Shown one piece after another: positions 21,501-56,415 of a stretch of 64,000 nt of DNA (position 1 is the first letter of the stretch; every line of letters begins with the position of its first letter). Both the position numbers and the translations under genes were made by a program. The notes under the pieces are model-generated. The model was not told where the DNA came from. It made no database searches and saw only the letters and a program-made list of their open reading frames with translations. The DNA comes from Paragordius varius (Eukaryota > Animalia > Nematomorpha): contig OZ176053.1 in the NCBI GenBank assembly GCA_964247055.1, forward strand, positions 1,736,001 through 1,800,000, in the 5' to 3' direction.

Positions 21501-24500
21501 ATTTTAAGGACCAACTTGAAGTGTTTAAGGACCACCTTGAATTGTTCAAGGACCAACTTGAATAGTTCAAGGACCAACTTGAATTGTTCAAGGACCAACT
21601 TGAACTGTTCAAGGACCAACTTGAATTGTTCAAGGACCAACTTGAACTGTTCAAGGACCAACTTGAATTGTTCAAGGACCAACTTGAACTGTTCAAGGAC
21701 CAACTTGAATTGTTCAAGGACCAACTTGAATTGTTTAAGGACACTCTTGAAGTGCAAATGGTATATTTCAATATTGTAATTATCAAGTTTTACGTATAAA
21801 AAAAACTTTTATGTTGTAATGGTTAATATATTAAATAAGTTGTAGAAACCTGTATAATTATCACTCAAATATTTGAAGATTGAACTAATGAGAAGCGAAA
21901 CGGCTCCAGTAACTACAGGAGAGGCTACACTTGTCCCTGATAAAACTTTGCAGCCCCCGCTAAATTAATAAAAAATAAATAAAAAATGAAACCTCGATAT
22001 TTTTGTTATATAACTTGGTTTTTGAGGGTAAAGTTGTAAAATAAGAATAGAAAGAGAGAGAAAACTAGATATAACCTCAATATATCACAATATTAAGCAT
22101 ATAGGTTATGTAGATAAGGTTTTCATTATTAAACATTTTTCTAAAATTATTGTTTTTAAATTAAAAATCATAAAAATAAGAGAATTTAATAATTTTTGGC
22201 TTATGACTTTTTTGAACAAATGGTATATTGAATATACATTAATTAAAATCACTAAAATAACGCATTTTTGGCAAATTACACATTGTAGTAAAAAAATGCG
22301 TGATCGCTTTATTTTTAATATTTAATAAATTAATATTTAAGTCAATCTACTAAAAATTACAAATTTAATGTAGTGTATCGATTGTAATAAAAATCAGATT
22401 TAATCATTTATAATATAAAATAGGTTTTTTTACTCAATATCCGAACCATATACAATCCCATGCGTTAATACATCAGGCTTAACTCTACCATAACCAAGTG
22501 GTAATTCCTGAAAAATGAAAACATTTAAGGTAAACATAAAACACTGATTTTTTTCCAGTCAAATTATATCTTAATTATATTTAACATAAAAATATAACTG
22601 ATATTGGGCAGTAAGAAAAAAATCGTTATTATTTTATCATTCACGTTATTAACTTATAATTTTAATAAAGTATATTTTATAATCTATCCAAACACACTTT
22701 GATGTAAAATAAAAAAATTGATAAGGTAATGTTTCTTGTATTAAAACTTCCTTAATTTTTTTCCTTAAGTTTTAGTCAAAATAAACCTACATTTGTGCAA
22801 ATATTACAGTAAAAAAAGGTTTTTAATATTTAAACTGACCTACTAGTGGTTGAGAAATCTAAATGTTATTGCATTTTCTAAGCTCCAACAAATGCTAAAA
22901 ACAAATCCACATTCAAGAATATGCCCATTTTACGGAAATTATCTTGCATTTAGCAAGAAGAAATTCAAAAATATTGAAATTTTTTAAACTTAGCCATACC
23001 TAAAATCTCAAAATTAACCCAAACTAATTTTGTAAATAACCCAAAAATTGATTTAGAAAAAATCATTTTATAAAAGGAAAACCTCAAAAAATTAAATTTT
23101 ATTTAACATACCCATGTGGTCATACCACGCGATGAAAAAGGGGCGAGCTTATTATCGGGCGTTAGACCACCAACTCCAATAACATCAATCATATCAGCCG
23201 GATTATTGAGTGAACCCGCAATGGGTCCATCATTCCCTATCGAAGATACTATAATCATATTATTGGCTGAAATTTCCCATACCTATTTTATACATTTATA
23301 ATTATATACCATTTACAGTTAAAATTCACCCTTAAACAATTCTTTAAATTGACCTTTGAACAATTCAAATTCACCCTTGAACAATTCAAATACCCTTGAA
23401 CAATTCAAATTCACCCTTGAACAATTCAAATTCACCCTTGAACAATTCAAATTCATCCTAAAATAAATGATGTGTATTCTTTTAGATAAAAAATTACCAA
23501 TACTTTTTTTTATATTTTTGTATATTTTAAAAATTAAAATTTTGTTTTAAATTAAAATAATACTGAAAAAATAATAAACTATGCCATAAGAATTTATTTC
23601 TTTTATAAATGATAAGTTATATTAGCCCGAAAACACATATTTATTTTTAGGGTAAATTTTAATGTTGGAGGGTAAATTTAAATTATTCGAGAGTGAATAT
23701 GAATTGTAATTCACCCTAAAATAAATTATTTATTTTCGGACTAATATAACTCCTTATTAATATGAAATATATCATAATAGCATAGTTTATTATTTTTTGG
23801 TATTATTTTAACTTAAACAAAATTTTATTTTTTCAAAATATAAAAAAATGTAAGTAATTTTAAATCTTAAAAAACACTTTATTTAAAGGGTGAATTTGAA
23901 TTGTTCGAGGGTAAATTTGAATTGTAAATATGTATATTTACATTGTTATAGAAAAAACGTAATAAAAAAACTAAAGGACAAATATTTTATTTACTAAAAA
24001 ACAACATTATTTTCAAACTTTGTTTTTTTCTCGATAACCTAAATGATTTACAATTGTAACATAAGTATTAAGTGTTTTATCAATTTACTTATCTATCCAT
24101 TATTTCGCACAATCAAAAACAATTAACTATATTAGAATAAATTAAGGCTTGAAAATACATGTTAAAAATTTGTGCGTTTCTTAATAAAATTATGAAAATT
24201 ATAGATTTAATATTCGCTCATATATAATTGATTTTATTCTACATAGAAAAGTGAGGATATGATAATTTTCACGTTCTGAATTTATATTAATACATAACGA
24301 GAATAATAACAGTTTTTATAAAAATAAATATTTTTATAAAGAATATCTATTATTATTAGGGATTTATAGTAAAAACTAAAATTATACGGACAAAAAGTAA
24401 AATTATAAAGACAAATATTAATTTCTAAAAGATAACCATACTTTTAAATCTAGATATCAATATAATTCATTGTATAAATGGATGGCAAAGTGTGAAATAG

Positions 24501-27500
24501 AGATATATAATACTAACACAATAAGTTTTATATTCTACAATTGTGACTAAATAACTTATATGAGAAAAATTAAGGTTTTAAATGTATGGTTGTCTTTTAG
24601 AAAAAAATAAATTTGTCTTTATATTTTTGCATTTTGTCCGTATTTTTATAGTTTATAAATTTAATAAATGAACAAACCTTATCCAAGAATGGGTGATCCA
24701 AAAAATCGGGACCTCCGATACTAAGATTAAGGATATGAAGTCGTTTCAAAATAGCATAATTAAATGCATCCAAGTACCATGATGTATAAGATATCTAAAG
24801 GTAAAATATATATACCATTTGCAATTCAATTTCACCCTTAAACAATTCAAATTCACCCTTGAACAATTCAAATTCACCCTTGAACAATTCATATTCACCC
24901 TCGAACAATTCAAATTCACCCTCAAATAAATAACATGTTTTTTAGGATTATAAATTACCTATATTTTATATATTTTTAAAAATTAAAATTTTGTTTTAAA
25001 TTAAATATATTACTGAAAAAATAATAAACTCTACCATAAGCATATATTTCATATTAATAATGAGTTATATTAATTCAAAAACACATAATTTATTTTTAGG
25101 GTTGAATTGTTTAAAGGTAAATTTGAATTGTTCAAGGGTGAATTTGAATTGTTCTAGGGTGAATTTGAATTGTTTAAGGGTGAATTTAAACTGTAAATGG
25201 TATATATTTAAAAATGAACTTCACTAAAACAAAATATTCATAGTAATGATCAATATACCTATAATATTTTTTAAATAGATAAAAAAATTTAAAATTAAAA
25301 TATAATTCGGCATATTTTAGTAATAAATTAAAGCGATCAAAATTTTGTTAGGAGAACAACATACCTTTAGGAATTGATTAAAGTTTGATTTTTTTTAGCA
25401 ATTTACAACAAATGGGTATGCTTTCAATTTTTGTGCATTTCCACCCAAACTCACTGATAACTTAATTAAATCCGTAAAATTAGTAATGTAAAAAGATAAT
25501 CCCTTGTATTTTAATTTTTCCACATATTACATCATTAATTTTAAAAAAAAATGTTTTTCGTATAATGAAAAATGTTTTTTTTGAGACCTAAAAGATAACC
25601 TAAATACTAGAGATTCCGTAAATACGCATTAAAATGTATAAATTGTCGCCCCCTTACACATAATTAATGTTAGTTTTCACATAAAAGATTAATTTTACAT
25701 GAAAAAAAATGTTTTAAATTTTCTAAACATATATTAATTTTGAGCTACAAGAAAATTATAAAACAAGCCCACCTGAGAATCCGTAAAAACGCATCAATGT
25801 TAAAACCCTTACAATTAATGTTAGTTTTCATATAAAAGATCAATTTTACATGGAAAAAATTTCAATTTTCAAAAATTTTAATTTCGAGCATAAAAGAAAA
25901 TAAAAAACAAACCTAAGAACCCTAAAAACGCCAAAATAGAAATCGCTGCCCCCTTACACATAATCAATGTTAGTTTTCTAATAAAAGATTAATTTTACAT
26001 GAAAAAAAAATGTTTTAATTTTCTGAGCATAAAAGAAAATTATAAAACAAACAAACCCACCTGAGAATCCCTAAAAACACGGAAAATGTAGAAATCATCG
26101 CCTCCTTAAATATAACCAATATAACATAATAAATTTAAAAAGATCAATTTTACATGGACAAAAAGGTGTTTTCAATTTTCAATACATATTTTAATTTTGA
26201 ACAAACCCACATCTCACCAGAGAATCCCTAAAAACGCATTAAAATGTATAAATCGATGCCCCTATACACATAATTAATGTTAGTTTACTTTTAAAAGATC
26301 AATTTTACATGAAAAGAAAAAGTGTTTTCAATTTTCAAAAATTTTAATTTCGAGCATAAAAGAAAATCAAAAACAAACTTGAGAATCCCAAAAACGCCAA
26401 AATATAAATCGCCGCCCCCTTACAATTAATGTTAAGTTTCATGTCAAAGATAAATTTTACATGAAAAAAAAATATTTTCAATTTTCAAAATTTTTTAAAA
26501 AAAATTATAAAACAAACCCACAAACCCACCTGAGAATCCGTAAAAACACGGAAAATGTTGAAATCACAGCCTCCTTAAATATAACCAATATAACATAATA
26601 AATTTAAAAAAGATCAATTTTACATGAAAAGAAAAAGTGTTTTCAATTTTCAAAAAGTTATTTAAAATTTGAGCATAAAAGCAAATTATAAACACCTGAG
26701 AATCCGTAAAAACTCGGAAAATATAGAGATCACTTTCAGGCGAAATCCCTGGACACAAGGTGCTTTGTCCCCCAATGACACCAGCCACAAAAGTTCCATG
26801 TCCCAATGTATCAATTCCACCTGAGACAAATCTAACACCATTATTTGTACCTTTATTCTTGTTTAAAAAACCATTGAGAGTGTCTTTATGAGGTAAATCT
26901 TTAGATGGATCTAAGATTGTGGAAATAATTTAAGAGTAAATATTGCTTCTTTATATATTCTAAAATGTGTGCTTTATGTATAAATCTTATCCAAATTAAA
27001 AGCAAATTTTATTAATTGGCTTCATGGTAAAAAAATTATATTATGCTTTTTAAAATTTTGCATGATGAATAAGATTGAGTAACTAAACTTTAGGACTTTA
27101 TATTCATAACTAAAAAAATTAGTTGAAAAATCAAGTTAATATTTTTTAGGTATATCATCCAAAGAAAAAAAAAACGAATATACCCGTCTATAGCATTATG
27201 ACAAATGATGCCAGAAAATAAAAATTTAGTTCTATGAAGTTTGGATTTTACAGAACAAAACATTATTTTTTGTAAATTGTGTGAATAGTTTGACTAAAAC
27301 CATTCTAAAAAAATAAATCGCTAGTCAGGTAGTAAAATTTACCCTATAAAATTGCGCAATTTTTCCATTCACTGTCAGTCCTAGGCAAGCGAGTGTTAAA
27401 GCTTTTCATCGGTCACTAATAATAGACTTTTCCTTAAATTCTTTAATAAAAAAGGAAAAAACATTATTTAAACTGAACAATAATCTCATTATATCATTCA

Positions 27501-29742: not shown

Positions 29743-29894
29743 ACTCTCCCGAGCTAATTAGGTATTTTTTTGTTTTTTAAATCCAGGTTATCAGAACTTT
29801 TATTGCGCATTCGTTCCCACAGATGCCTTATTTTGCATAATAGCTAATGTATTGGGAAAATTTTAAGCTTTGATTTAAAACTCATTCAAATTGC
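29743..29894. promoter_or_regulatory. Putative bidirectional promoter shared by MBTPS1 and ZNRF
   Basis: Only 152 bp separate the two divergent ATGs (29742 on -, 29895 on +). Confidence 0.6.
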
Positions 29895-32800
29895 ATGGGT
29901 GCCAAACACAGCTCTCCGAGACCTCGTTCAAGCGATGGATTCTTTCAACAATACGCTTCACCCTCAGGATCCTCGTCTATTTTATCAGCCGGTCCTGAAC
30001 CGTCACGATTACTGCTAAGTAACAATCGGCAAGACCGAACGTCTGCTGGGCATTCACAACAAAGCCGTTTATGCAATCGAAGACTTTATTCTAGTCTCAC
30101 GAATGAATCGTTTGAAGATTTAAGTTTTGAACAAGCCGCATTAAACCAATCTACTACATCATCAACCTTATCTGCTCAAAATAGTAGTAGTAGCATTATT
30201 GCAAATTCAAATTTCTCTCAAAGGCATTATGCTTCAAACAATGCCAATAATTTATCTTCATTAATCTCGAATCGAAGGAGTCCCGCACGCCAACTTCGAA
30301 GTGGCAACAATATTGACCCAATCTTTTGGGATCACCTGTATGCGCTCAGATGTTCCATATCGAGTTCCCTTTATTTTGAAAGTTAGTTTTTATTTTTCGG
30401 TTTTTATTTTATATTTAGTCAAGTTACTCTTATTAAATTATACATAAAATCCCATGATGAATTTGCATTAACGCATGATTAAGTTTAATAAAATTCTTAT
30501 AACCTTAAAATATACAATGTTTCGACATTAATTATTAAGATTTTTGTGTATTTTTGCGGATCGTTTCTTTGGTTTTAGTGTTAACAGTTTTTATTTGATG
30601 ATTATTGATCAAAATTTTTAATATATAGATAAAAAATGAAGTTAGATTACCAAGTAAATAGATATACGCTTATTATTTGTTGTTTTCATAGTTAAACTAT
30701 AGTGGACCCCCTTATAAAGATTAATGATTGCATCATTAGTATTTTGGCAAATAAATTTTTCATATAGTTTGATTTCAATATCCAGCTTTCTGCCTATAAT
30801 ATAATTAAATATCCAGCACTCTACAAATATCTAAATGAAAATATGATTATATATAGAAAATGGGTTTTGGGCTCTGACGATGCCCAAATACTAGTAGGTT
30901 TGTTTGAAATGTTATATTAACTTTAAACGACCATAGCTGAAAAACTTGAGCTTAAATTAAAAGTAGAAATACTGTATCATGATTACCATGAGCCAATTAT
31001 AGTCTATAGGCGCTTGTTATTACTAAAAAGCTCAGTATAGCGAAAAGGTCCATATCTCTAGAGTTATAAAAACGGAAAAACGATGCCTTAAACAAGAGGT
31101 GCCCAACACAAATGGCTTTGGATGGAACATTTCTGATCATCAAATAAAAACAGTTGAGTCGCATTAAAAATATATATGGGCACTCATAAATAATATATTA
31201 GGGTGCATAAATTACAAAAATACAGATATTTATTTCACAAATTTTTTCTAACTCGTTGCCAAAGGTTGAAACGATTCATTCAAATTCAAAAATTGTTTAG
31301 GAAAAAAACGTGAATTTTACCAAAAAAATTTTTATATGAATAGCAATATTTTTAGGAATTATGGAATTTCCTAATTATTTGGTAATTTTTCAAGGGCCGC
31401 GTGCTGAACATCCCTACCTTAAACACTTGTTTTAATTCACTTATATATAAAAAATTACTGTCCTTAGCAAAAAATAAATACGATTAAAAATTGATTGAAA
31501 TCTATTATTATACTTACCTGTGTGTTGTTTATATTACATCAGTAGTGATAAAATAGTAATATGTTGAAAATTTCAAATTTTTATACTACTTTTTATCAAT
31601 ATATATATAGGGGAATATCAATTGTTTAATATTTACTTTGGCCCCAATACTCTATTATTGTTATGGCTGAATTTATATTTTCCTGATTGGCAAATATAAA
31701 ATTATTATATCTAAACCGTCTATATAGAGTTGCTTTAATGTTCATTAATAGGTTGTAAATTCTTGTGTTTTTTTTTTCAGAGTTAAAAAACTCCAAAAAA
31801 ATTTGCAAATAACTTTTTTTATATATATATATATACCATTTACAATCCAAAATCACCCTTAAACAATTCAAATTCACCCTAAAAATATATGTGTTTCGAC
31901 TAATATAACTTATCATAATTATAAAATATATCTATATATTTTTGTATTATTTTAATTTTATTTTTTAAAAATATAAAAAAATATAGGTAATTTTTAACTT
32001 TAAAAAACACATAATTTATTTTAGGATAATTTGGATTGGAGGGTTCAAGGGTGAATTTGAACTGTAAATGGTATATATATGTACCGTCTATATAAAGTTG
32101 CTTAATCATATTAAATTATAAAAATAAGTTCGAATTTCTTATTTTTATTCAGGGTTAAAAAACTCCAATATATATATATATCTTAAACTTTTGAATATGT
32201 TAAAATGTGTGATTTTTATTTTTTAGATCTGAAATGTCCCATATGCACGAAAAAAATTCCTTCCGATGATTTAGAATACCATCTATTTTTGTGTTTGACT
32301 AAACCGCGCATTACATACAATGGTATTATTTAAATTTTTTTAAAGGTAAATTAGTTGTTTTAACTATAAATGAAAAAGCATGAGAGAGCGCATTTTATTT
32401 GTCTTTGTAAGTTGCATAAAAATTTCTGAAAAAGGTATCAATTTACATAAGGCGAATTTTGTTAAACTTTGGTATCATTAATTGTAGACATGCGTTTCAA
32501 GGAACCTTTTTACTGCTAAAATATCTAATTACAGTTTTTTCAATTAATTCCATGGTTCATATTAACATTTCTTTTATACATTACATTATTTTGAATTTTA
32601 AGTTAAAACTTATTTTTATGTGTAAACTAAAAAACAGTGGAAACACTCACAATGAATAAAGATGAATGTGCAATCTGCCTTGATGATATGGCCAAAGGGC
32701 AAACTATAGCCCGATTACCCTGCCTTTGCATTTACCATAAAGAGTGAGTATATATATATTATATTTTATAAAATGGGGGTATGCTTGGTAAAATTATTGA

Positions 32801-39000: not shown

Positions 39001-40781
39001 ACCTATATTTTTATTATATTTTAAAAAAAATAAAATTTTGTTTAAAATAAAATAAATACTAAAAAAATAGTAATAAACTCAGAGCTTCTTAAACTATGGG
39101 TTGCTACCCCATTTGGGGTCGCGAGTGTTAAAAATACAATTTAACAAAAAATGTTTTTTAACTTGTAAAATTATTATTATAATGAAAAATAAAAATCGTA
39201 GTAAATATATCATAAAATCTTCTGGTTCGGAAAGACTGTTTATACCAAAATTTCTATTGCGATCATTATATTCTATATGTTTATAAAAATGGAAAATGCT
39301 GGCTTTGTGATCTGTTTCCGGAAAACCGGTGGACCCATTCATATCCAAATGTCAAAAAATTATAATCCTTAATGAATGCTCGACAAAAGCTTCGCCCTTT
39401 TTGGAATTAGGCCCCCAGTTCGGGCCCAACCCGCGTAAAAAACGGGTTTTTTTCGAAAACACAAGTCCAAAATCGTTTTGAGGCATTTTTCCGGAAAACG
39501 TGTTGGTCGATTTTAAATATGATTTTTTTTACTTTTTCCGATTGCGCCGAACATATTCGGCTTACTTTTTAAACTTAGACTCTCTTTTTAGCTATCCCCG
39601 TAAAATGCCATTTTTATTCAAAAAAAACAAATAATTTTTTGCCCAGGGTATGAGACCGTTAAAGTTCAATGAGCATTACAGGTATTACCTGTTAAAAGGC
39701 AAAATTTTAGTCTTGTGTTTTTTTAATATTGGCTGCCGGGTAAACATATAACCGCTAAAATATATAGAAATTGCGTTGTTTTGGAGCTAATTTACAGATA
39801 TGAAGCCATATGAGCTCATTAAAAGCTTGAAATATTCCCCGTCACTAGGTAAAAATTAAGGTCGAGCTTTTTTTTATTAGCCGTTAATTTGGGTCCTTTA
39901 TGCCCTAAAAATACGCCATCATATAACGATTATTTAATGTTGAGGTATTTTTTCGAATAACCCATGAGACGATGGTATCAAAGATGATTCCAAATATTTG
40001 CCTTATAAAGGGAAAAAATTTAACTCAGGGCTGGGTAGAAAACTACCGGCTTAAAACTGAGACGCCATACAAAAATGGCAGAGTTCTGAAACTAATTTTC
40101 AAAAAACCTAAGACGCCATACGAGTTCAGTTAAACACATTTCTGGGGATTTGTATAATTTTAAAAAGATACCACAAATGATTTACTTTTTATATCCCTTG
40201 ATCCCAGCTGTGTTAACACAATTTGAAAATAGAATTTTAACCATGATTTCGTAAAACGAAAACCTTAAAATCCAATGGTTGATAAACTTTAATAAGGGAC
40301 GGTTTAAATATGGTCTTTTGACTAAAAAATATTTGAGCCTATGCAAAAACCCGTAAAAGAATAATTAAAGACATTCTTTTTATTAACCATGTTTTTTATT
40401 ATTTTTTATCTCCATTACTCTATTTATTGCAAATTATTAACAATAATTATCGGTGAGACTACGTCACAACGAAGCGTGACAGGATCAGCTAGTATCTTGT
40501 ATTTTACTATGAATCAAAAAATGTTATAGAATTTTTGTCAATCTCTTATAACCAAAATAATCCTGATATATATTATCAACAAAATTTCTAAGTCATTTTT
40601 CGAAGAAACTATTATTTTTCTTTTATATTTGTTGGGGTCGTTAAGAAACTCGCAATCATAAATGGGGTCGGGAACTACAAAAGTTTTAGAAGCCCTGAAC
40701 TATGACTTAAAGATATATTAATATGGGTTATTTTAGCCCGAAAACACATAATTTATTTTTAGGGTGAATTTGAATTGCAAA

Positions 40782-40823
<42 letters not shown>

Positions 40824-43800
40824 GCTGTGTGCTAAAAAGAGGGTCATTTTTATTTAACAAAAAAATTTTTTTTAATGAGATAGCTGATGACCAACGTATT
40901 CATTTGCCGCAAAAATTTTTATATGTTGACAAATCGTTTATTATCATTTTAGGAGATATTTTCAATATATAAATAGCCTAAAATATAGTTAGGGTTTCTA
41001 TAAAATTTCAGGTCAAAAGATGGCGTTTTTCTTTATTACACTTAAAAGACAAAAAAAATTAATGAAACTATATTAAAATATTTTTTCTAAATTATTTACC
41101 ACCTAAACTTATTAAAATCTTAACATTAATATTTGATTCGGAAATAAAACTTTTATATCATGAAACCAAAAATATTGTTTATTTTTTCATTTTTTTGTCA
41201 TCTGGTTTATAAGTGTATAAAAAATTTATACTGTTTTATTTTGGATTCTTACATGATTAGGAATTATTAAGTATATAATTAATGCACAATAGGATTGAAA
41301 ATTAGTGGTAAATCAACCAACAATCCGTACAAATCCCAATACAAATATTAATTTGTCATAAAACAGACTTGTTAGAGGAAATTGTAAGGATTTTTGGGTT
41401 GATATTCCACTACTTTTAAATTTTATTTTGCATAAATTATATACTTAATAATTCCTAATCATGTGAGAATCCAAAATAAAACAGTATAAATTTATACACT
41501 CATAAACCAAATGCAAAAATAAAAAACAATATTTTTGGTTTTATTTTGATATAGAAGTTTATTTTACTTAATATAATATAGATGTTAAGATTTTAATAGT
41601 GAGTTTAGCTAATAAATATTTAAAAAAAAATTATTAATATAGTTTTATAAAAAATAATTATCTTGTAAGTGTGTTAAAAGAAAAACGCCATCCTTTGAGT
41701 TGAAATTTTATAGAAACCCAAACTATATGATTTTTGGCTATTTATATATTGAAAATATCTCCTAAAATGATAATAAACAATGATATTTCAAATTTTATCA
41801 TTATTTTTTGAATTGTCCTTAATTATCCTTAATTACTTTTTGCCCAATTTCGATTTTCTCTCAATATTTCAAAAACTAGGTTGTCAACAAATAAAAATTT
41901 TTGCGGCAAATGAATACGCTGGTCATAAGCTATCTCATGAAATTTTTCGTTAAAAATTTTTTTTGCACACAGTGTAATATGGGTACGCGGATACAGTATA
42001 AGCCTATTATCAAAAAATTATTTTTACATATATTTTATGATTTTTTTAGGATTAATATGCATAAAAAATTTGTTGGACGATTACAAAGACTTCAATATGT
42101 TATGAAATAACATTCCTAAATGATATTTACTAATATATATTTTCTTAATGCTACCGATCGGGTTCCAAAATTTTAAAAAGAGGTTTTATTGTTTTATTGT
42201 CACGGAACCATTTTTTTAATATAAAAAATTAATCGATTTAAACAAAACATATTAAATAAAAGTTTTACTGAGGAATGCAGAAACCATTACTTCCGCTATA
42301 CTCGCTCCTAAGTATATATGAAATATATGTTTAAATATAAAAATTATTGAAATATAATTCTAATAACTTCAAATTATACCCTAAATATTCGAATTGACTG
42401 ACCTTTTAACGAATTCGCGCTAAGCAAATATTTTGTCCTATTTTCCTAGTCTTTTTTGTTAAATATATATTTTTCAAATATGAAAAATACAGTTTCTGAT
42501 TGATTTTAGTGATTTGTTGAAAATTTATTTAAAGTTATTTAACCAAGGCACCTAAATTCAAACAATACCATATTTTATGAAATATATAGAGTTGAAAAAA
42601 GGCTCTAAAACCCAATCGGGATTTTTTAGCCTCCGAAATGCAATGGAGTGTAAATGTTAAAGGGAGGATATAAAAATATTTAAGGGCGAGTATAAATTTT
42701 AAATATTATTATGTTGATACCTTCGGCCGCTATTTCAAATAAAAATAATTATTAAATGATTTTTATATATTTACAATGATATAAAAAGCATTTCATCTTA
42801 CTAGCACTGGCAGCAGCTCCTCCAGCTTAAATTTTCCAAAAAAAAAAACAAGAAAATTTGTTTATACTTCATAATTTTTTGAAATTAAAGAATTGAACCA
42901 TATTACCTGCTATTCCTTCTCCAACCTCAACTGTTAGATAAATATTAAATGGCAAATTTAACAAAAACTTTTAAGATAATATTCTTTGGAATGGTGAAAG
43001 AATTAATTTTACCCGAAGCTCCGGCTGTTTCATAATATTAATAGAAAATATTCAAAAAAACAGTTAACACCAAAATTGAATTCCAAATAAAATTTGTCAA
43101 AAACCTGCTATAACGCCACCCTCAGCAGCAGTACCTATAATAATGAAAATAGGTAAAATAATTTTTTAATTCTACCCATTTAATATTTACGTATACCATA
43201 GAATTTTAGATTTATAAAATACGATCTCAAACATTTTGCCGCCAAATCTCAATTGGCTCATAACTCAAACACTATTTTTTTGTATGGTCTAATTATCTTC
43301 TAGATAAATATTTTAACAAAAAACAACTTTTAATATTTTTCCATCGAATTTCGCTTAAGTATATCCAGTTAGGTCTTTTGATAACAATTAATCTTCAAGT
43401 AGGAAATAAATTAACTTTTTGTCCTATTCAAATATCATTAAAGACATTTTTTGTTAGAAGTAGTTGATTACAACTAGGCCTACTTTAAATTTGACGGTCA
43501 TATGTGTTTGATTGCAATCCAAAAACTAATTATTATTAATAAAGGACGTTGCGTAAAACAAATACAAAACATTGGTTATAATACTAAGAGATATTTGAAG
43601 ATCATTTTTGTTTAAGATACGTTAACTACCTGATACAGCTCCCGCAATGGCTATCAAAATAAGTAGAATAAGTTTAATATTTAAAGACTATTCATTTTTA
43701 AAAATATGCATTAAGATTGTTTATATGATAAAAATTAATTAACCAATATCTCCGACTTCTGCCGTTTCTAATCCTATTTCAGTTGCATCTAATTAAATTG

Positions 43801-46800
43801 TATATAGTATTAATGGTTGCCCAATATTACATTTAAATTATATAGAAAAATGTATCAGGAATCTCATGGAGCTTTAGGTTTTGGGGCATACGAATGATAT
43901 AAAAAAATTATTTATTCTTTTGTGGTAGGTAATCCATATCAGAAAATGCCAAATTTAAGCATATATTTTGCATACCATTTACAGTTTAAATTCACCCTAA
44001 TTGAAATTCACCCTAAAATAAATTGTGTGTATTTTAAGATTAAAAATTACTTTATTTTAAAATATTCAATACGAAATTCTGGTTTATTAATATAATGCTG
44101 AAATTATATACTCTGTTTTAAAAATATATTTTTTATTTATGATCTATATTATCCTTAAAACACATATTTTATTTTTAGGGTGAATTTAATTGTTCCAGGG
44201 TGAATTTGAATTCTTAAAGGGTGTATTTGAATTGGGATTGGATTGTTTTGATGGAACTTGATGGAAACGGTATAATGCTTTCATAAAAACCTTTTTTCCA
44301 ATTAATTTGATAATGCTGAACATTTCATCACCTCAGGGTTTCGATTAACATTTTTTAAATTTATGATAAATATAAATTGTGTTTTTATATCAAAATTCAC
44401 CAAAATTGATAGTAAATGAACCTTTAAATAAAAATTCTGAAGCGGCATCATTAAATTATATAGAAAAATCTAAAAACGTTTTATATCATTTTTATTGAAA
44501 ATTAATAGGACGTACGCTTCAACAAAATTTTGCTAAAAATTGAATTTTTCTAAAATGTATTATTTAAAAATATTTTTTTGTATTGTCAAAATTTAGCATA
44601 TATATTAAAATTTTTATTGCATAATTCCGGCATTTTTGCGTCTATTTTAAAAGAACTAGTCGGTGTAATAGAGTAAAAAAATTGGGACTTTTGGAGCCCA
44701 CATCTAAAAATATATTAAAAAAATATTGTTTTGCTCTTTCCACTTTTTGTGATATATTTTGGTGATATTTTTTGGAATGACGCATTTATTCGTTAAAAAA
44801 TTTATTATAAAAAATGTGATCAAATTTTTCCATTTTCTCATATGGAGCACTTAGCACAAGGTTTTTAATAACTTTTTATATCACTCGTAAGGACCAAAAT
44901 CAAAACTACCATGATAATACTGATACATTTTTATCAAGATATTTTTTGACCCCCGATTTTGTACACTCTGTTATACAGAGTTTATATGCAAATTGCCCTT
45001 CCATAAAATAATTTGATACTTTGGAAAAACATTTTTTAATAATATGTGCATCCCACACGGATTATTTTTTTAATAAATTCTTCATCTCAAAGATATTTAT
45101 TCAATTTCAATGGTAAAACTGGCTCTTTAAAAGATCCTAATGTTAAACAACAAATGATTATATAGCTTCAATGTTTTTTTTTGAAAAAATTAGTACTGAT
45201 TTATGTTTGCATGCAAAAGAAATAACTACTTAAGTTTAGTTTAATTGGATCCAAGTTGTCATTATTATTTTAAATAAAACATAAAGTATAAAATTATGTT
45301 TTAGTTATTTTATTTTTTAATATTATTTTGTAACATGGACCTTTTATTAAAACGTCGACCAAATGATAATCCGCTAATTGGCGTATTTAAGTATCGCATT
45401 TATTTATTTATTTCAAATCCCTCATTTGTTTTTCTTTTGCCCAAAAAATGTAAACAGCCAACAAATAAATATATATTAAATAGTAACAATTAAAACGCAA
45501 ACCACCCACCAATATTAAATAATAATTTTACCCCCATCTTAAATTTGGATTTTAATTATTTATACTTTTCACAAGCAAATTTTTTGGATTATTATTATAC
45601 AATCATGATATAGGGTCGTATAAGTGACAAAGTCATTTCAGTGAATGACTCGGCTCAACTCACTTAAGTTTAGTGGATTTAATCTGCAATTTTTTATGGT
45701 TATATGAGATGAAACTATCATACTAATGGCTAAATTTTTTTATGTAACTCCACAATTAGGAGGAATACATAGATTTTATAATGTGTATTATCAACTGGAT
45801 TAATGATTGATTCAAGTGGTCAAACTTGAGTCAAGGCTTATTTGCATAACCTTAAATTTAAAGTTTAAAGTGATAAAATTAATAATTTACCCATTATAAG
45901 ATATAATTAATGAAAATTTTAACTACTATAAAAATTATATAATAACAAAATATTTGTTTAGATTCAATTTTAAAAATATTATCGCATTTTAACCAAAATC
46001 ATTATAAAAATAAATAAATCATAAATAATACCGATGTTGGCTAGTCGTAAGGAAAAAATATATTTTATTAAATGTGTAAAAACTTTACAAATGATTATAT
46101 TAAGATAAAAAATGGGTTGGTCAATAGCCAGGCCATTAAAAATGTTAAAACAATCTTGAAATGCTTAATGTGGAAATGTTAAATCTAAAGCTTTTTATTA
46201 CATATTTTACATTATATACATTAAGTGTGAGAAAGTTATTTTTTCTTCATTTCGTATTTTTATGGAAATTCCATAATCCGAAAATGCTAACGTTGCATAT
46301 TAAATTATTTCAAACACTGATTTTAATGCACCTAGCGGTAAGATCTTCGTTATAATTTTTTTAAAGAAATTGGCTAAACCTTTGCATATAAATGGATAAG
46401 AGTATAATAGATATATTTTCAAATGTAGGTTTTAAAAAGCATTAACATTTATGAAGGAATGCGCCCTAAATTTTATCAAAGAAACAGTCTATAAAATTTC
46501 ATTGAAATTGATTATATAGTTAAAAGCATATGGCCAGAAATTTCTATTTATCCCAATTTGTACCAAAAAAGTTAATTTTACCTAAAATCTCCGCGTCTTG
46601 TACTATTTTAAAAATGATAATAAAAAAGAAAATTATTAATATTTTATTTAAACTCTTACTTGCAGCAACGACATTTTCTACCAATGTAATAATTATATAT
46701 AAAAAATTTATAACTAAATTGATTTGAGAATTTTTAAAAAAGTTGAAAGAAAACCTGCAGAATTTCCTGCCGTACTTAGCACAACATGTGCTAAAATTAA

Positions 46801-49800
46801 AGTGGAATAAATTAGATTTTATGTAAAATGTCACAAATAATTTTTTCAGGTTTGATAATACCAGCTTGTCCAGCATCTTCTAAACCAATACCCTCAGCCG
46901 TATGAAGTAATGCTAAATTTTTTTAATTATTTCTGAAAAAATTACCCTCGTATTCAGCAGCTAAATGATGCAAGAAGAGTCAAAAATTATTAATATTTAC
47001 CATTTGGACTTCAAGAGTGTCCTTGACACTTCAAGTGGGTCCTTGAACATATCAAGTTGGTCCTTAAACGCTTCTTGCTTGATCAAGTTGGTCCTTGAAC
47101 ATTTCAAGTTGGTCCTTAAAATCTTAAGTTTAGATTTAACCATAATTTTTGCATGTATTTTTTTATTTTTTTATTTAATTATTTTTTAATCTATTTTTAT
47201 TTATTTATTATATATTTATACATTCAAAAATTAAAAATTATATTCAAAAACCACGTTTTTGTTTCAAACTATTTTTCCATTACAAACATTAAATTTTAAA
47301 TATCAATGATATGTAAATAATAACCCAGAAAATTTAATTTTTTTTAATACTTAAATTCTTATAAATATCCAAAATAATTTTAAGAAATCAAATATATACG
47401 GTTTCTGAATGTTTAAAAGTTGATATTGATTTGAATTCTGTTAAATAATAGAAAATAGGTTTAAAATGATAAAATAGATGAATGATATACGATTTGATTG
47501 ATAAAAGTTACAAAAAAGTCAAAGGACCAACTTGAAGTGTTTAAGGACACTCTTGACTTGCAAATGGTATACATAGTATGAAAAAGTATAAAAGCTAGTT
47601 TTTCATTCATAATGCCAGTTAGCATAAAGAAAATTATTATTGGGTAATAATAGTTAATGATAAATTTAACCCTAAATCAATAATATTTCCCTTATTTCAT
47701 CTGTCAATTATTAATGTAGAACTAGCAATTGTATATACCAGTTCCCAGTCTAAATAAACGTTTTCCAAGTCAATCGAAACATTTTCCCAGTCAATCAAAA
47801 CGTTTTCCCAGTCAATCGAAACATTTTCCCAGTCAATAAAAACATTTTCCCAATCAATAAAAACGTTTTCCCAGTCAATAAAAACGGGACAAACTTTTAA
47901 CCATTATCAGCGTAATATTAGGATATTATTTTTTATAAAAAAAAACAATTATTGAATGACAATTTTCCAATTATCTTCCATACCTAATCATTAATGGCTT
48001 ATTCTTTAAAAGTTATATTATTGGAATTAGAGATGAAGATAATATTTTTTTATTGATGGCATTATTTGCGGCTAACTTACAAAATCTATAGTTACGGATA
48101 TATTTTTATAAATAATATACCATTTTTATCTCAATTATTTAGCACGTCATATTGGATCTCAAACATAAATTTTACCCTAATTTTATAACATTTGTTATTT
48201 GGTTTTCGGGTGCCTAACGCGGCTTGCCGAGTATCTTTGTGCGGCCCACTAAAAATTTAGAAATCCATATGCAAAAATATGCCCACAAAATCTTAGTAAT
48301 ATTCATATTTCTAACGCAATTACTGTGAATGAGTCTATTAAATTGGTAACAAATTAAAAAAAAATTGTTGAATTTTTGTATTTTACAGTCTTATGTCTAA
48401 TCGAAAAATTATTTATGAAATATATCGGATGCGGAACGCCGTGCTTTTTGAGTATGCCGGCGAAGCCATTTGGTTAGACACCCCTGATTTAATCAAATAT
48501 CTTATTAAATATTTTTAAATTTAGATACTTTTTCTGACGGTATTCTTATGGAAAAACTTGTCATGTTTAAAAAGTGTTTTGAAGGGTTCGGCATATAGTA
48601 ATGCGAACCATCAATAAAATAAAAAATATTATCTTAAAAACATCTCAGATTACAAAAGATATAACTTTGAAAGAATAAGTTTGATTGTCCACTGGAATAT
48701 ACTTGGAAAATTATTCAATAATTGTTTTTTCATGAAAAATAATATCCTAATATTACGCTGATAATGGTTCAAAGTTATTTTTATGTCTTGTTTTGATATT
48801 TATCATCAAAAATAAAACTGTTTTTATTGACTGGGAAAACGTTTTTATTGATTGGGAAAATGTTTTTATTGACTGGGAAAATGTTTCGATTGACTGGGAA
48901 AACGTTTCGATTGACTTGGAAATTGTTTCGATTGACTGGGAAAACGTTTCGATTGACTGGGAAAACGTTTCTTTAGACTGGGAAATGGTATACATACTTG
49001 TACTGTACATAAAATGATTTTTGTAAAATTACCCAATGTGTCTTCAATGTTTGCTAGAATACATATAGATATTACATATATATAGTCGTAGCTTGCATTT
49101 CCAGCACCTACAAGAATCCGTGATGCGCCCCCTCCCTCCATGCCACCCCCAAAAAAATTAACCTGTATGACGACTCATAAACGGGTAATTTTTTTATGTA
49201 TTATTTGAAATAATAACTTTTAAATACATATTTTTATGGAAATAAAATTTAAGTATATCAAAATTTGGCCCCCCATTTAACTATGGCGCCCGGGGCATAC
49301 CTTTCCTCGCCCGAAGCTACGCTGATATTTGTAACTTAATTTTTTAATCACTCAATTTTTCATAACATATATTTAAGGTTTGTATTGATCATTGAAATAT
49401 TTATCTTATCCATTTACACCCAAATCATCCTACTACTCATTCTTTGCAGTTTTATGGATAGGAATAGGAATTTTATCCGCCAATTAAATGTTAGAAAAAA
49501 AATATTAAATTAAAGAGAAATTATTATATTATGAACTTATACAGGCAAACTGATCTAATATAATGAATGATATGATATTTTTATTACAGTTATATAATGC
49601 ATTTCAAACTGCCTTTCGAGAACCTTATCTGTTCCTAGTGGCCTTTGTGCATTTATTTGGTCGAAAGGAATAACAAAAAATAAAGTAATTTTAAAACTAA
49701 GTTAGAACCAAAGACTTCTAAGTTATATTTAAGCAATAGATATCATATAATAACACAGAGCTTTTCCTATTAATATTTAAAAAATATAAATAATAAGGTA

Positions 49801-52800
49801 AACCTGGTTCAGAAGCCATATAGCTCATGATTTCATTTGTAGCTGTACACATATTATTATAAATTAGTTTACTCATTGGTGAAAGTTGACCAGATTCCAA
49901 AGCCGTCATCATTAATCCTGTTATACAAAAATAGTAAAATAATAAAACTATTCCATCCTTTGATTATTACTTTAGTATTTTAACTGGATATTAGTGACAT
50001 TAATAAGACATTTTATTATTAATAATGGTCAATTACAATAAAACGCATTAACATTTCATTTTGCTAGATAGAACATTATTAAAGTGTATTTTCCTTATAG
50101 GCTATTACCCATATTCAAAAAAAACAAAAAGTGAATTGCAAATCCATATATTTTTAGTTTTTTAGAGATAAATCCAAAAAAATATTTAAGGGCAAAAAGT
50201 TCGAGGTGAGAATTGTCTGCGATTTTATACATAATGGCTTATAGGGTATAAAATGACTATTTTGACCCAATATGATGAAGACATTTTAAGACACTTATCT
50301 TTATTGGTTAGAAATTTACCCAAAAGGGTAATGACATGTTTATGCGGAAAAAAAAATTGCATTTAAATATAATTAACATTTTGCCCTAAGAAACATTAAA
50401 ATCACATGAGATTTCATGTTAAAAAAATTGTTTTCTGAGGTTTCCGAATATTTTAGTTAAATCATAATATTTATCTTTATGTTGCTCCATAAGAGTCTAC
50501 GCTTTACTTAGGAAATTATTTTGATTTCGAATTCCCAAAAATTACACAGATACCCTAATTTACTTTCTGCATATAATTTTTATAGAGAAACAGTAACTAA
50601 CTTCTAATATCATTGCCGGCTTGTATGTATAAACCTATAAATCATAAATAAGCATATTAGTTTTGGTAGCAAAATCGTAATTTTATTTTTGCAATTGATT
50701 AATAATCTATTGGAACAATTTATCACAGATAAATAATCAATAAACAGCAAAAGTATTGGTATATGTGTATAATTTTAGCTAAAAAACGGTAAAAATAGAG
50801 ATGTTGAATACAATTACATTTTTTCTCTATTAACAATCCATTACCTTTTAACGTAGTATTATATCACAGAGCAATTAGCTGATTATCTTAGTATTTAAGC
50901 TATTAAGCCGAATATAAAAATAGGCTATATCAAGCCTTTAGACGCATTAATTTTTTATAAAAATGTAAAATTGGAAAAATCATCTCAAATTTCCTTGCAG
51001 CCATTTTGTCTTATATAAATTTTTTTAATCGTTAATGCAACTGGGAAATAAATGTATATTATGGTTATAAAATGTAAATAATTAACTTTAAAAAGTTTCA
51101 GCCTATTTTTTACCAACAAAACCATAATATATTTGGATTTTAAAATCAGTTATCGTGTTTTGAAGCTGTCCCAATTTACTGTAAAAAATATAAGCCTTTT
51201 TATCTAATATAAGAGAACACTGTTTGATGATTAAATTTTAACTAAAATAACTTATAAAACTGCAGTTTATTTACAAAATTGAGCTCTGGGATATAAAACT
51301 ACCCCAAAAGGTACACTACAACAAAAATATAAAATGGTATGGAAGTGTTGACAAATCAAAAGACTTATATATAACTTATAATATACCTTCTTCTATGAGA
51401 GATGATAGTGTTTCGAATAATAAAATAGGGGATCGTTTTTTTCGTTTTAGTGTTTTTTGATTCTTTTGAAAACGGTTGTCAATGTGATAAAAAATATCAT
51501 CCATAGGTATTTTATTTTTGTCCCTTTCATAATACAACTTGGTTTCATGCATACTTTCATTGATGGTTAAATTATATGTTTGATTTTTGATATGCCACAC
51601 AAATATAACTTTTTCTAACACATAATAATAAACGCATTTTATTAAATTTATAATATAAAATTGAGGCACATATCCAGGTTTGGACGTTTCAGTCAAATTA
51701 TAAATGGTAATGGAACTTATTAAGTCATATTCAACTTTATGTTAAACAAAATTTTTATTTAAAACAATCAATGTCAAATGGCCTGAGAAATGTATTGGGA
51801 GACATTGTTTATGGCCAAAAGGAAGCCTTGTAAATGAACGGTGAAATTATTTTTGTATTGTTTTTGAAACTCAAGCGGTATCATATATACACCAACAATG
51901 GTCTTTTTTAAAGACATCTAATGAATCGAGATGGCCCACTTAAACAGCGAAATTCTAAAGATAAGGTCCAAACTACCATCTTTAGCTCAGTCGTCGCACG
52001 CAAACCGCGGCTTTAAAAGTGCTTTTGCATAAACATCTTCAAATGCAAACAGCAATGTAATTCTAATTGGTGAGGAAAAATTTTTTTATTTCGGCCTTTT
52101 AAAGTTTTTTGGTGATAATTATTGATTTAATTAGTTAGGTTTGAATGAAATGATAAAATGAATCATTAAAGATTGGAGACCGTTGTTAGCACGGTCAGGG
52201 TTATTTAAAAAAAATACCCCGATTAGTTAAAACAAAAGTATGGACCTTATTTAGGCTATAAGACGAATCCACTAACTAAAAATTTAGTAAAAATATCCTT
52301 AACTGGTTTGGTAGAAAAATTAGATACTATTCCGGAATCACAAAATGCAAGGTTAATACCAACTAAAAAATTTAAAATTTACAAACCTGTTTTTATATAC
52401 AACAGATTTATACATCAAAATAAATTTTATCATAAAATGATTAGACCAGTCAATATAAAATAATTACTTTTTGTGACTGTCATCATTAATATCATGTGGG
52501 AAGTAAAGTTAGCTCGATGAAATTTTTCATACAACATTTTTCGTGTTATGTCTAAAAAATATTATGAGTATACAATGCACTTTTATCCGTAGTAATTATT
52601 GCCATATATTTGCGGCTGGGCACTTTATAGCTTAAATTGTTGGAAGTAAATTGCACAGTTATTATATGATGTTGGATATCTTAAAATGCGAAAAATATGT
52701 TGATTATATTATTATAAGATATTCAAAAAAATTATTTCATCAATTAAAATGGTTTACGTACAGTAAAAATTAAATTTATACAGACAAAATGTAAAATATA

Positions 52801-55478: not shown

Positions 55479-56415
55479 GCATAAATAGTTTCAAAGTCTC
55501 TAACAAAGTTTAACATTATATTTTTAAATAAAAAATATGTATTATAACAGAGGCATAGCTTATATTTCTGGCGTCCATGCATGAATCCATGATGGCGACC
55601 CCCTGATCCATGCAACCTCTTGCATTTTTAAATAGTGATCAATTCAAACCAGAGACATGACCACTCATAAATGGGTGATTTTTTGTATTATTAAAAATAA
55701 TAACTTTTACATACCTATTTTTTGTAATATAATAAAAAAATGTGCATCAATCCCCCCTTTCCTCCCCCCTAGGTAGGCCTTCTTTTTTAAAACCTAGGCT
55801 TAAACGTTAAAATTGATTAACGCATCAATTATATTTAAAAAATTTAAGCAAAATGACATACCCAACATCATTTTGGTGTGAACTATGCATATGGAAAAGA
55901 AATTTTTGATTAAAAAAATTATTTTACTATGCATTACTGTGGCGTTACATTCGTACGACATTGGTGCTGTTTTATTCTTGAATTTGATAAACAGTGTGGC
56001 CATTTCACCAAGTTTTAGGGCATTTGCATAAAATCTCCATTGGATATTCTTAACGTATATCAAAAATTATTACCGTCAGATTTTTGAATTCCGGAGCGTT
56101 TGTGTTAACCCTATCGGGATAATGGTCGGTGTAATCAAAGTATTGTTGTAAGTTTGATGAGAATGACATATTAAGAAATTTTTGGAACCGTGTATCGTTG
56201 ACTCGAAATAGAATGTGAGATTTATTGTATGATACTAAGATTTTGCACGGCTTTACTAAAAATAAACTTATAGTCGGCATACTATGAACATGTAATAAAC
56301 AAATAATAAAATTGGATTTTTAATCATTAAACTTAATCAAAAACGGGATTGGAATCGAAAGCGTTTTTGTGGTACTATTCCGTGATAATTGCTGCCTTCC
56401 TGTTTTAATTGCCAT
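36016..56415 (-). CDS. Orphan multi-exon gene (over 35 exons, roughly 900 aa): N-glycosylated ectodomain, RKKR furin site, micro-exon-encoded Gly/Ala/Glu segment, C-terminal TM segment(s)
   Basis: Phase-compatible exon chain: 56415-56333, 56281-56074, 56048-55928, 55882-55862, one uncertain exon near 54.3-54.6 kb, 54134-54043, 53925-53789, 53704-53624, 53213-53075, 52679-52581, 52551-52468, 52362-52277, unresolved 52245-51740, 51734-51387, 50634-50602, 49917-49804, 16 micro-exons 49053-42269, 42115-42085, 40338-40186, 38036-37990, 37572-37558, 36778-36733, last exon 36061-36016 (alternatives exist). No family recognised; the 5' start is uncertain. Confidence 0.65.
38398..38677. repeat. Inverted-arm element built from degenerate about 21-bp units (aaaaatgttgcgtttggatg type)
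   Basis: ttttcagtcaaaagcaacatg...atgttgcttttgactgaaaa. Relative at about 53440-53580. Confidence 0.6.
39270..40075 (-). repeat. Second, inverted copy of the 520-1350 dispersed repeat
   Basis: Collinear reverse-complement similarity to 520-1350. Confidence 0.75.
40823..41974. mobile_element. About 1.15-kb foldback (near-palindromic) element
   Basis: Ends cgctgtgtgctaaaaa and tttttgcacacagtg with TA flanks; arms of about 500 bp are reverse complements. Copies at 57161-57844 (truncated) and 59695-60890. Confidence 0.85.
42269..49053 (-). CDS. Array of 16 symmetric (phase 1-1) micro-exons of the orphan gene
   Basis: Exon coordinates (length in nt): 49053-49033 (21), 46960-46946 (15), 46912-46862 (51), 46790-46755 (36), 46677-46660 (18), 46602-46582 (21), 46040-46032 (9), 45729-45724 (6), 43788-43744 (45), 43650-43630 (21), 43134-43105 (30), 43024-43013 (12), 42930-42907 (24), 42825-42802 (24), 42729-42721 (9), 42307-42269 (39). 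Each is a GC-rich island bounded by AG and GT, a multiple of 3, and stop-free. Confidence 0.8.
47000..47567. mobile_element. MITE family B, second copy
   Basis: ccatttggacttcaagagtgtcc...ggacactcttgacttgcaaatgg with TA flanks; fewer 21-mer units than 20927-21761. Confidence 0.85.
47738..48988. mobile_element. MITE/foldback family C, 1251 bp, with inverted arrays of the 21-mer ttttcccagtcaatcgaaaca and a nested element at 48208-48486
   Basis: TIR ccagttcccagtctaaataaacgtt and aacgtttctttagactgggaaatgg with TA flanks; arrays at about 47755-47885 and 48825-48985. Confidence 0.85.
49113..49325. mobile_element. Small repeat with GC-rich ends; relative at about 55580-55790
   Basis: gaatccgtgatgcgcccc and actcataaacgggtaattttt..tattatttgaaataataactttt are shared with 55582-55710. 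Confidence 0.5.
54617..55160. mobile_element. TTAA-flanked MITE (piggyBac-like target site)
   Basis: TTAA at both ends with imperfect TIRs (ttaatccctcgattc and gtatcgaagtgttaa). Copies at about 60905-61365 and 3780-4000. Confidence 0.6.

Follow-up and report, generated by a model that had tools for sequence, protein, structure and literature searches.

Can a row of coding islands, the smallest of them only two codons long, belong to one gene, and what kind of protein would such a gene encode? The question is raised by a segment of about 7 kb on the minus strand of contig OZ176053.1 of Paragordius varius. The segment runs from position 49053 to 42269 of the window, as we call the whole 64-kb stretch of animal DNA that was analyzed (26% GC), and lies within AT-rich DNA. 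A first-pass annotation had read sixteen islands in this segment as micro-exons of a gene that produces many variants of a surface protein, in the manner of the micro-exon genes (MEGs) of schistosomes. Our analysis indicates that the segment is probably a real, unannotated run of micro-exons, all in phase 1. Judged from its sequence features, the run would supply an orphan protein with an acidic low-complexity spacer, its exons would be recognized by intron definition, and the uniformity of phase would be largely compositional. The array very probably consists of 13 to 16 symmetric phase-1 micro-exons, in frame with an exon of 114 nucleotides (nt) at 49917-49804, here called exon 0.

All 16 islands that had been claimed were recovered at their minus-strand coordinates, with AG before and GT after, with lengths divisible by three (6-51 nt) and with an open frame in phase 1. 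Splicing the 16 segments reproduces the 127-residue peptide exactly as the annotation had written it. In order, the micro-exons measure 21, 15, 51, 36, 18, 21, 9, 6, 45, 21, 30, 12, 24, 24, 9 and 39 nt, with a median of 21 nt. Two measures were used to judge them one by one. A codon log-odds model, scored in bits, was trained only on two recognizable genes of the window, the site-1 protease MBTPS1 and a sulfotransferase. A second measure, the G1 scan, went through the whole window, on both strands and in each of the three symmetric phases, to find AG..GT segments in which codons beginning with G are overrepresented. The array and its first flanking exon are as follows.

49804-49917, minus strand: exon 0, 114 nt, phase 1-1; codon model +12.0 bits versus -37 and -28 in the other frames; T-rich acceptor tract.
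49033-49053, minus strand: micro-exon 1, 21 nt; weak, with a codon score of +1.2; set apart by introns of 750 and 2072 nt on its two sides; 36 AG..GT-flanked 21-mers of such GC content occur per strand.
46946-46960, minus strand: micro-exon 2, 15 nt; +3.2 bits; separated from micro-exon 3 by an intron of 33 nt.
46862-46912, minus strand: micro-exon 3, 51 nt; G1 scan p=5e-5; +10.4 bits.
46755-46790, minus strand: micro-exon 4, 36 nt; +4.7 bits in frame versus -7.7 and -0.9; introns of 71 and 77 nt on either side.
46660-46677, minus strand: micro-exon 5, 18 nt; +2.0 bits; inside the cluster of short introns.
46582-46602, minus strand: micro-exon 6, 21 nt; +1.2 bits; upstream intron of 57 nt with 11% GC.
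46032-46040, minus strand: micro-exon 7, 9 nt; codon score -0.1, unsupported when taken alone; canonical splice sites (YAG, GTA) plus a pyrimidine tract.
45724-45729, minus strand: micro-exon 8, 6 nt, 33% GC; codon score -0.5, unsupported when taken alone; about 69 AG-6nt-GT candidates of such GC content per strand in 64 kb.
43744-43788, minus strand: micro-exon 9, 45 nt; G1 scan p=1e-5; +6.5 bits; the E-I-G-L-E motif of micro-exon 3 recurs here.
43630-43650, minus strand: micro-exon 10, 21 nt; +2.4 bits; G1 scan p=6e-4 for a form of 24 nt.
43105-43134, minus strand: micro-exon 11, 30 nt; G1 scan p=2e-5; +5.0 bits.
43013-43024, minus strand: micro-exon 12, 12 nt, 75% GC; +3.2 bits; no other AG..GT-flanked 12-mer on this strand of the window reaches 75% GC.
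42907-42930, minus strand: micro-exon 13, 24 nt; G1 scan p=3e-5; +3.5 bits.
42802-42825, minus strand: micro-exon 14, 24 nt; G1 scan p=3e-5; +7.6 bits.
42721-42729, minus strand: micro-exon 15, 9 nt, 78% GC; +2.4 bits; no other AG..GT-flanked 9-mer on this strand of the window reaches 75% GC.
42269-42307, minus strand: micro-exon 16, 39 nt; +3.1 bits versus -10.8 and +1.6 in the other frames.

The two forms of micro-exon 10 (43627-43650) reflect tandem donors 3 nt apart, with GT at 43629 and at 43626; this choice is frame-neutral and could add one Gly codon. A scan for missed exons returned no further micro-exons, and the 64-kb window holds no second copy of them.

As to the number of exons, the claimed total of 16 holds in part. 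Thirteen are well backed, while the segments at 49053-49033, 46040-46032 and 45729-45724 are without individual support and are best treated as optional. Sequence alone cannot decide on these three, because every exon is a multiple of three and omitting one leaves the frame unchanged. The same property carries the claim that any subset of exons keeps the frame, which we can confirm: the exons end only in G or A, so that the junction codons are free of stops throughout. The example that had been given for changing junction codons, in which D-A-T becomes an N-A-T sequon, fares less well, as it hinges on the 6-nt exon at 45729-45724, the least supported of all.

How far does the array exceed what chance would offer in such DNA? 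By itself the mechanical criterion says little: 138 AG-3n-GT candidates in the region are open in phase 1, compared with 71 on the opposite strand. When only GC-rich candidates are counted, the minus strand has 36 and the plus-strand control 4. Measured by offset from the acceptor, base composition is strongly 3-periodic (chi-square p=3e-25): 80 of the 127 codons begin with G, and 73% end in A or T. The two other frames of the spliced array contain 9 and 7 stops, and after shuffling of bases within exons the frame stays open in only 0.035% of trials (3.5e-4). GC content at third codon positions (GC3) is 0.27 in the array and 0.30 in the recognizable genes of the window. Since the two match, the GC-richness of the array is confined to codon positions 1 and 2. 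The codon model gives the array +56 bits in the claimed frame and negative scores in the others, with 14 of the 16 exons positive. The G1 scan recovers six of the array exons, all in phase 1 on the minus strand, and almost nothing else in the window beyond the known genes and one repeat element.

The splice sites add evidence from positions that were not used in selecting the exons. A pyrimidine stands at -3 in 15 of 16 acceptors (background 0.47, p=1e-4) and an A at +3 in 13 of 16 donors (background 0.31, p=5e-5). The acceptors are also preceded by a T-rich tract (z about 4). By k-mer depth in a DNA run the exons of the array lie in single-copy DNA, and repeats are restricted to the long introns. 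In a comparison with a second DNA sample and with a related organism at 80% likeness, none of the listed differences falls inside exons; as the lists are patchy and incomplete and only about 2.4 would be expected there, this carries no information on conservation. One contig of the second DNA sample differs from the window within intron 10 (43223-43439), with 14 differing positions and 3 gaps over 217 nt, and the adjoining pieces are identical; this patch suggests a divergent haplotype or patchy polymorphism.

The encoded peptide is strongly biased. Among its 127 residues are 35 Ala, 16 Gly, 15 Glu, 12 Ile and 11 Val; Lys, Arg, Pro, Cys and Trp are absent altogether (P about 1e-11 at the coding composition of the window), and the net charge is -19. 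Short motifs recur along it, such as A-E-G-I-G-L-E and A-T-E-I-G-L-E, or A-E-V-G-D-I-A, A-E-G-G-V-I-A and A-E-G-A-S-I-A, and these repeats are out of register with the exon boundaries. Such a peptide is probably a lineage-specific, strongly acidic, Ala/Gly/Glu/Ile/Val-rich low-complexity segment built around a motif of the A-E-G-x-I-A type. It may act as a flexible acidic spacer or stalk in an orphan protein; its exons would be spliced mostly constitutively, and the skipping of an exon would be tolerable.

The introns suggest how exons of this size could be found by the splicing machinery. Nine of the 15 internal introns are only 33-93 nt long and have 11-21% GC, and the exons have 33-78% GC. 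Recognition would most likely proceed by intron definition. The long introns of the array, 302-2072 nt, carry high-copy repeats and have probably been enlarged through repeat insertions. Intron 1 contains a foldback element, whose inverted arms at 47726-47886 and 48840-49000 are 89-94% complementary and about 950 nt apart. The arms are arrays of 21-nt tandem repeats, and their k-mer depth in the DNA run points to a very high copy number. A dispersed family of tandem repeats of about 21 nt is found at 47000-47120 in intron 1 and at 20750-21810 and 24780-24930 in introns of MBTPS1; it yields long open frames, for example of repeated K-D-Q-L-E-L-F, and swells lists of open reading frames (ORFs).

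Why should all introns share one phase? Of the 36 AG sites in the spliced sequence, 28 end at codon position 1, that is, in phase 1. The uniformity would thus be largely compositional, because codons ending in A followed by codons beginning with G place the protosplice sites ('AG|') in phase 1. We considered and rejected a recent origin of the short introns from introners or from tandem duplication, as no significant similarity between introns was found. Since the short introns are mutually dissimilar, any duplication must be old, and nothing points to an introner family.

Several observations weigh against the reading of the segment as a real micro-exon run that encodes an acidic spacer. If composition were the only factor, all 16 introns would share phase 1 with a chance of only about 2% (0.78^16), so that a further cause is needed, either duplication or selection that favors symmetric exons. 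Taken singly, three exons (21 nt at 49053, 9 nt at 46040 and 6 nt at 45729) do not rise above chance level. The function is read from peptide composition only. Exon 0 had 0 matches in a collection of 5.8 billion protein clusters, and a candidate upstream exon with an RKKR motif, described below, had 0 homologues among 1.84 billion protein representatives. Transcription was looked for in three RNA assemblies of 19-30 million letters each, which are labeled with the same species as the DNA runs containing the locus. No RNA contig was found on 42200-48199; these assemblies are small and uncalibrated on a housekeeping gene, so this is absence of evidence only. Sampled words of the locus and of the ORF at 51.4-51.7 kb were likewise found in none of the three. 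A DNA control run covers the locus at single-copy depth.

What protein the array belongs to depends on where the gene begins and ends. The claim that the flanking exon at 49917-49804 is coding is borne out by its score in the claimed frame (+12.0 bits), and it contains an in-frame ATG-ATG at 49912-49907, a possible start codon. Beyond exon 0 and the array, two further candidates come into question.

51387-51741, minus strand: candidate upstream exon with the RKKR motif, 355 nt; phase-1 donor compatible with exon 0; membership in the gene uncertain.
40186-40321, minus strand: candidate terminal exon, 136 nt, very uncertain; read from the acceptor at 40321 it has 46 codons, which score only 0.2 bits as coding sequence.

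The first of these lies in an ORF of 121 codons (51741-51379), the longest between 31 and 64 kb. It scores as coding sequence with no more than about 0.1 bit per codon, and its composition resembles that of chance ORFs. Pfam returned no match for six flanking ORFs, this one included, and no convincing exon for a signal peptide was found within 10 kb upstream. A reading modeled on viral fusion proteins, in which a furin site is followed by an Ala/Gly-rich segment, was rejected: the segment after RKKR is not hydrophobic, and the Ala/Gly-rich part is filled with Glu and split by 15 introns. At the other end, the terminal exon of the first-pass annotation (40338-40186) proved to be out of frame, with a phase-1 stop after five codons. 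The last coding exon may instead be micro-exon 16, whose donor, when read through, gives S-K-T-F-I and a stop after five codons. A gene on the plus strand at 29874-32720 bounds the downstream extent of the micro-exon gene; it is divergent from the start of MBTPS1, begins with a Ser-rich ORF (29874-30383) and contains a RING-H2-like exon at 32634-32720 with the motif C-A-I-C-L-D.

It might therefore be that the product is a small cytosolic acidic protein, which starts at the ATG-ATG of exon 0 (49912), ends just past micro-exon 16 and includes neither the RKKR ORF nor the 40-kb exon. We regard this as a possible account, although on balance an unlikely one. It fits an in-frame stop upstream of the exon-0 ATG, inside the acceptor tract, as well as the good coding score of exon 0, which the RKKR ORF lacks. 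The read-through stop behind micro-exon 16 is followed about 70-90 nt downstream by AATAAA motifs, but at such a composition this motif is expected about every 400 nt, and all donors look canonical, that of micro-exon 16 included. Moreover, the strong acceptor on exon 0 calls for at least one upstream exon, and the donor of the RKKR ORF is in a compatible phase.

The second alternative is the diversification system that the annotation had proposed: combinatorial exon skipping would diversify a surface protein, secreted or membrane-anchored and cleaved by furin, into many variants at the host-parasite interface. The architecture itself agrees with this idea. According to the operational definition of Olson et al. 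2020 (PMC7653826), MEGs have at least 7 exons, of which at least half are micro-exons (<70 nt and divisible by 3), and four or more of these follow one another in a run. The predicted model, with its 13-16 consecutive exons of 6-51 nt, all multiples of three, falls within that definition, so the MEG-like architecture stands, as does the statement that gene finders would miss such a run of symmetric phase-1 micro-exons. A biological definition (DeMarco et al. 2010; Philippsen et al. 2015) asks in addition that micro-exons make up most of the coding region, that the product carry a signal peptide and be secreted or anchored in the membrane, and that protein variants arise when symmetric exons are skipped. 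Micro-exons account for 381 nt of coding sequence next to 114 nt of exon 0; their share drops to about half or less if the 355-nt RKKR ORF, further upstream exons and the 136-nt terminal exon belong to the gene. The stop-free junction codons for any exon subset and the RKKR motif in a phase-compatible upstream ORF would suit such a system too, and a peptide free of Lys and Arg would be expected to resist trypsin-like proteases.

However, the three small RNA assemblies offer no transcripts and hence no isoforms, an exon for a signal peptide was not found, and the sequon example needs the unsupported 6-nt exon. The uniform phase, which would permit free skipping, is partly a by-product of composition. 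Of the proposed processing by furin the RKKR motif remains, but its ORF has a weak coding signal and neither a homologue nor a Pfam match. The proposed membrane anchor finds no support in the modeled protein: neither a transmembrane segment nor a glycosylphosphatidylinositol (GPI) anchor was found in it, its best 19-residue hydropathy is 1.47 (<1.6) with Glu residues inside, and the proposed terminal exon is out of frame and stops after five codons. An anchor, like a signal peptide, might lie on exons beyond those of the model. Hydrophobic ORFs downstream were tried as an anchor and rejected, as they look like AT-rich noise. Taken together we consider diversification of this kind doubtful.

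The remaining alternative, that there is no functioning gene but a decaying, unexpressed relic of a micro-exon gene or a set of over-read chance AG..GT islands, could point to the missing transcripts, to flanking exons without homologues and to the 138 mechanical candidates, but it is improbable in view of a frame that stays open through all 127 codons, strong periodicity, a GC3 like that of the background, canonical splice-site positions and 4 GC-rich candidates in the plus-strand control against 36 on the minus strand, and a relic in a genome of 26% GC would gain stops fast.

We thus return to the reading of a real phase-1 micro-exon run that encodes an acidic spacer. It could be extended to the proposition that a parasitic worm lineage other than flatworms evolved micro-exon genes independently, and that this locus supplies combinatorially spliced, protease-resistant, acidic surface or secreted variants against an insect host. 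In this full form the proposition is, in our opinion, very unlikely. Its words 'independently evolved' require an organism outside the flatworms. The GC content of the window, about 26%, agrees with the 26.93% published for a hairworm genome, which falls short of proof. A search of one literature library returned no paper that ties micro-exon genes to Nematomorpha or Acanthocephala. If the locus is transcribed, it would help to show that a second animal lineage arrived at a gene design known to date from parasitic flatworms alone. One could then ask which cause yields such genes: parasitism, an AT-rich genome with intron definition, or the encoded composition. In coding sequence rich in Ala, Gly and Glu the protosplice sites fall almost only in phase 1, and symmetric exons may hence arise without selection for combinatorial splicing. 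Genes of this kind are missing from annotations and protein databases, so that the proteomes of these animals would be incomplete.

The rest of the window can be described briefly. Its other minus-strand genes are the sulfotransferase-like gene (1.5-3.3 kb) and MBTPS1 (11.5-29.7 kb), and a search of the window against Rfam gave no match. A GC-richer dispersed element is present in two copies of opposite orientation, at 1046-1330 and 39300-39640, which are 79% identical over about 300 nt. A short element is common to 49167-49245 and 55657-55732, with 84% identity.

How does the locus compare with known systems? MEGs have been reported only from platyhelminths, and all of them carry a signal peptide (Philippsen et al. 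2015, PMC4350168). In S. mansoni their micro-exons measure 3-81 nt (PMC10526429). Like the MEGs of schistosomes and tapeworms (DeMarco et al. 2010; Philippsen et al. 2015; Olson et al. 2020), the locus described here combines a long run of tiny exons of 3n length with introns of up to kilobases, would be missed by gene finders and encodes an orphan low-complexity product. Unlike them, it has no signal peptide that we could find, and most of its introns are short (33-93 nt) whereas those of MEGs are long. Exon skipping is documented for MEGs, while our locus is known from predicted exons alone. Another parallel is VAL-6 of schistosomes, a composite gene of which one segment is MEG-like (PMC4350168). 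As in VAL-6, very small symmetric exons form part of the gene and are joined to larger ordinary exons, at least in the model of the first-pass annotation. VAL-6, however, has an SCP/TAPS domain, and the flanking exons of our locus are without a recognizable domain and of uncertain membership.

Outside the MEGs, similar in design are the arrays of symmetric phase 1-1 exons in elastin, in the PEVK region of titin and in mucin-like stalks, which encode repetitive, biased spacers and allow frame-neutral skipping. Our locus resembles them in that symmetric exons of one phase encode a biased repetitive spacer, and the motif repeats suggest that the array probably grew by duplication. It differs in that its exons are much smaller (median 21 nt), its repeats lie off the exon boundaries and its introns retain no residual homology. 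The neuronal microexons of vertebrates and other bilaterians, finally, are 3-27 nt long and of regulated inclusion, and occur as single exons in conserved structured proteins. The exons of 6-27 nt at our locus would likewise need special recognition, and their inclusion would likewise alter few residues. In contrast to the single neuronal microexons, however, they stand in a run of 13-16 that forms a whole low-complexity domain.

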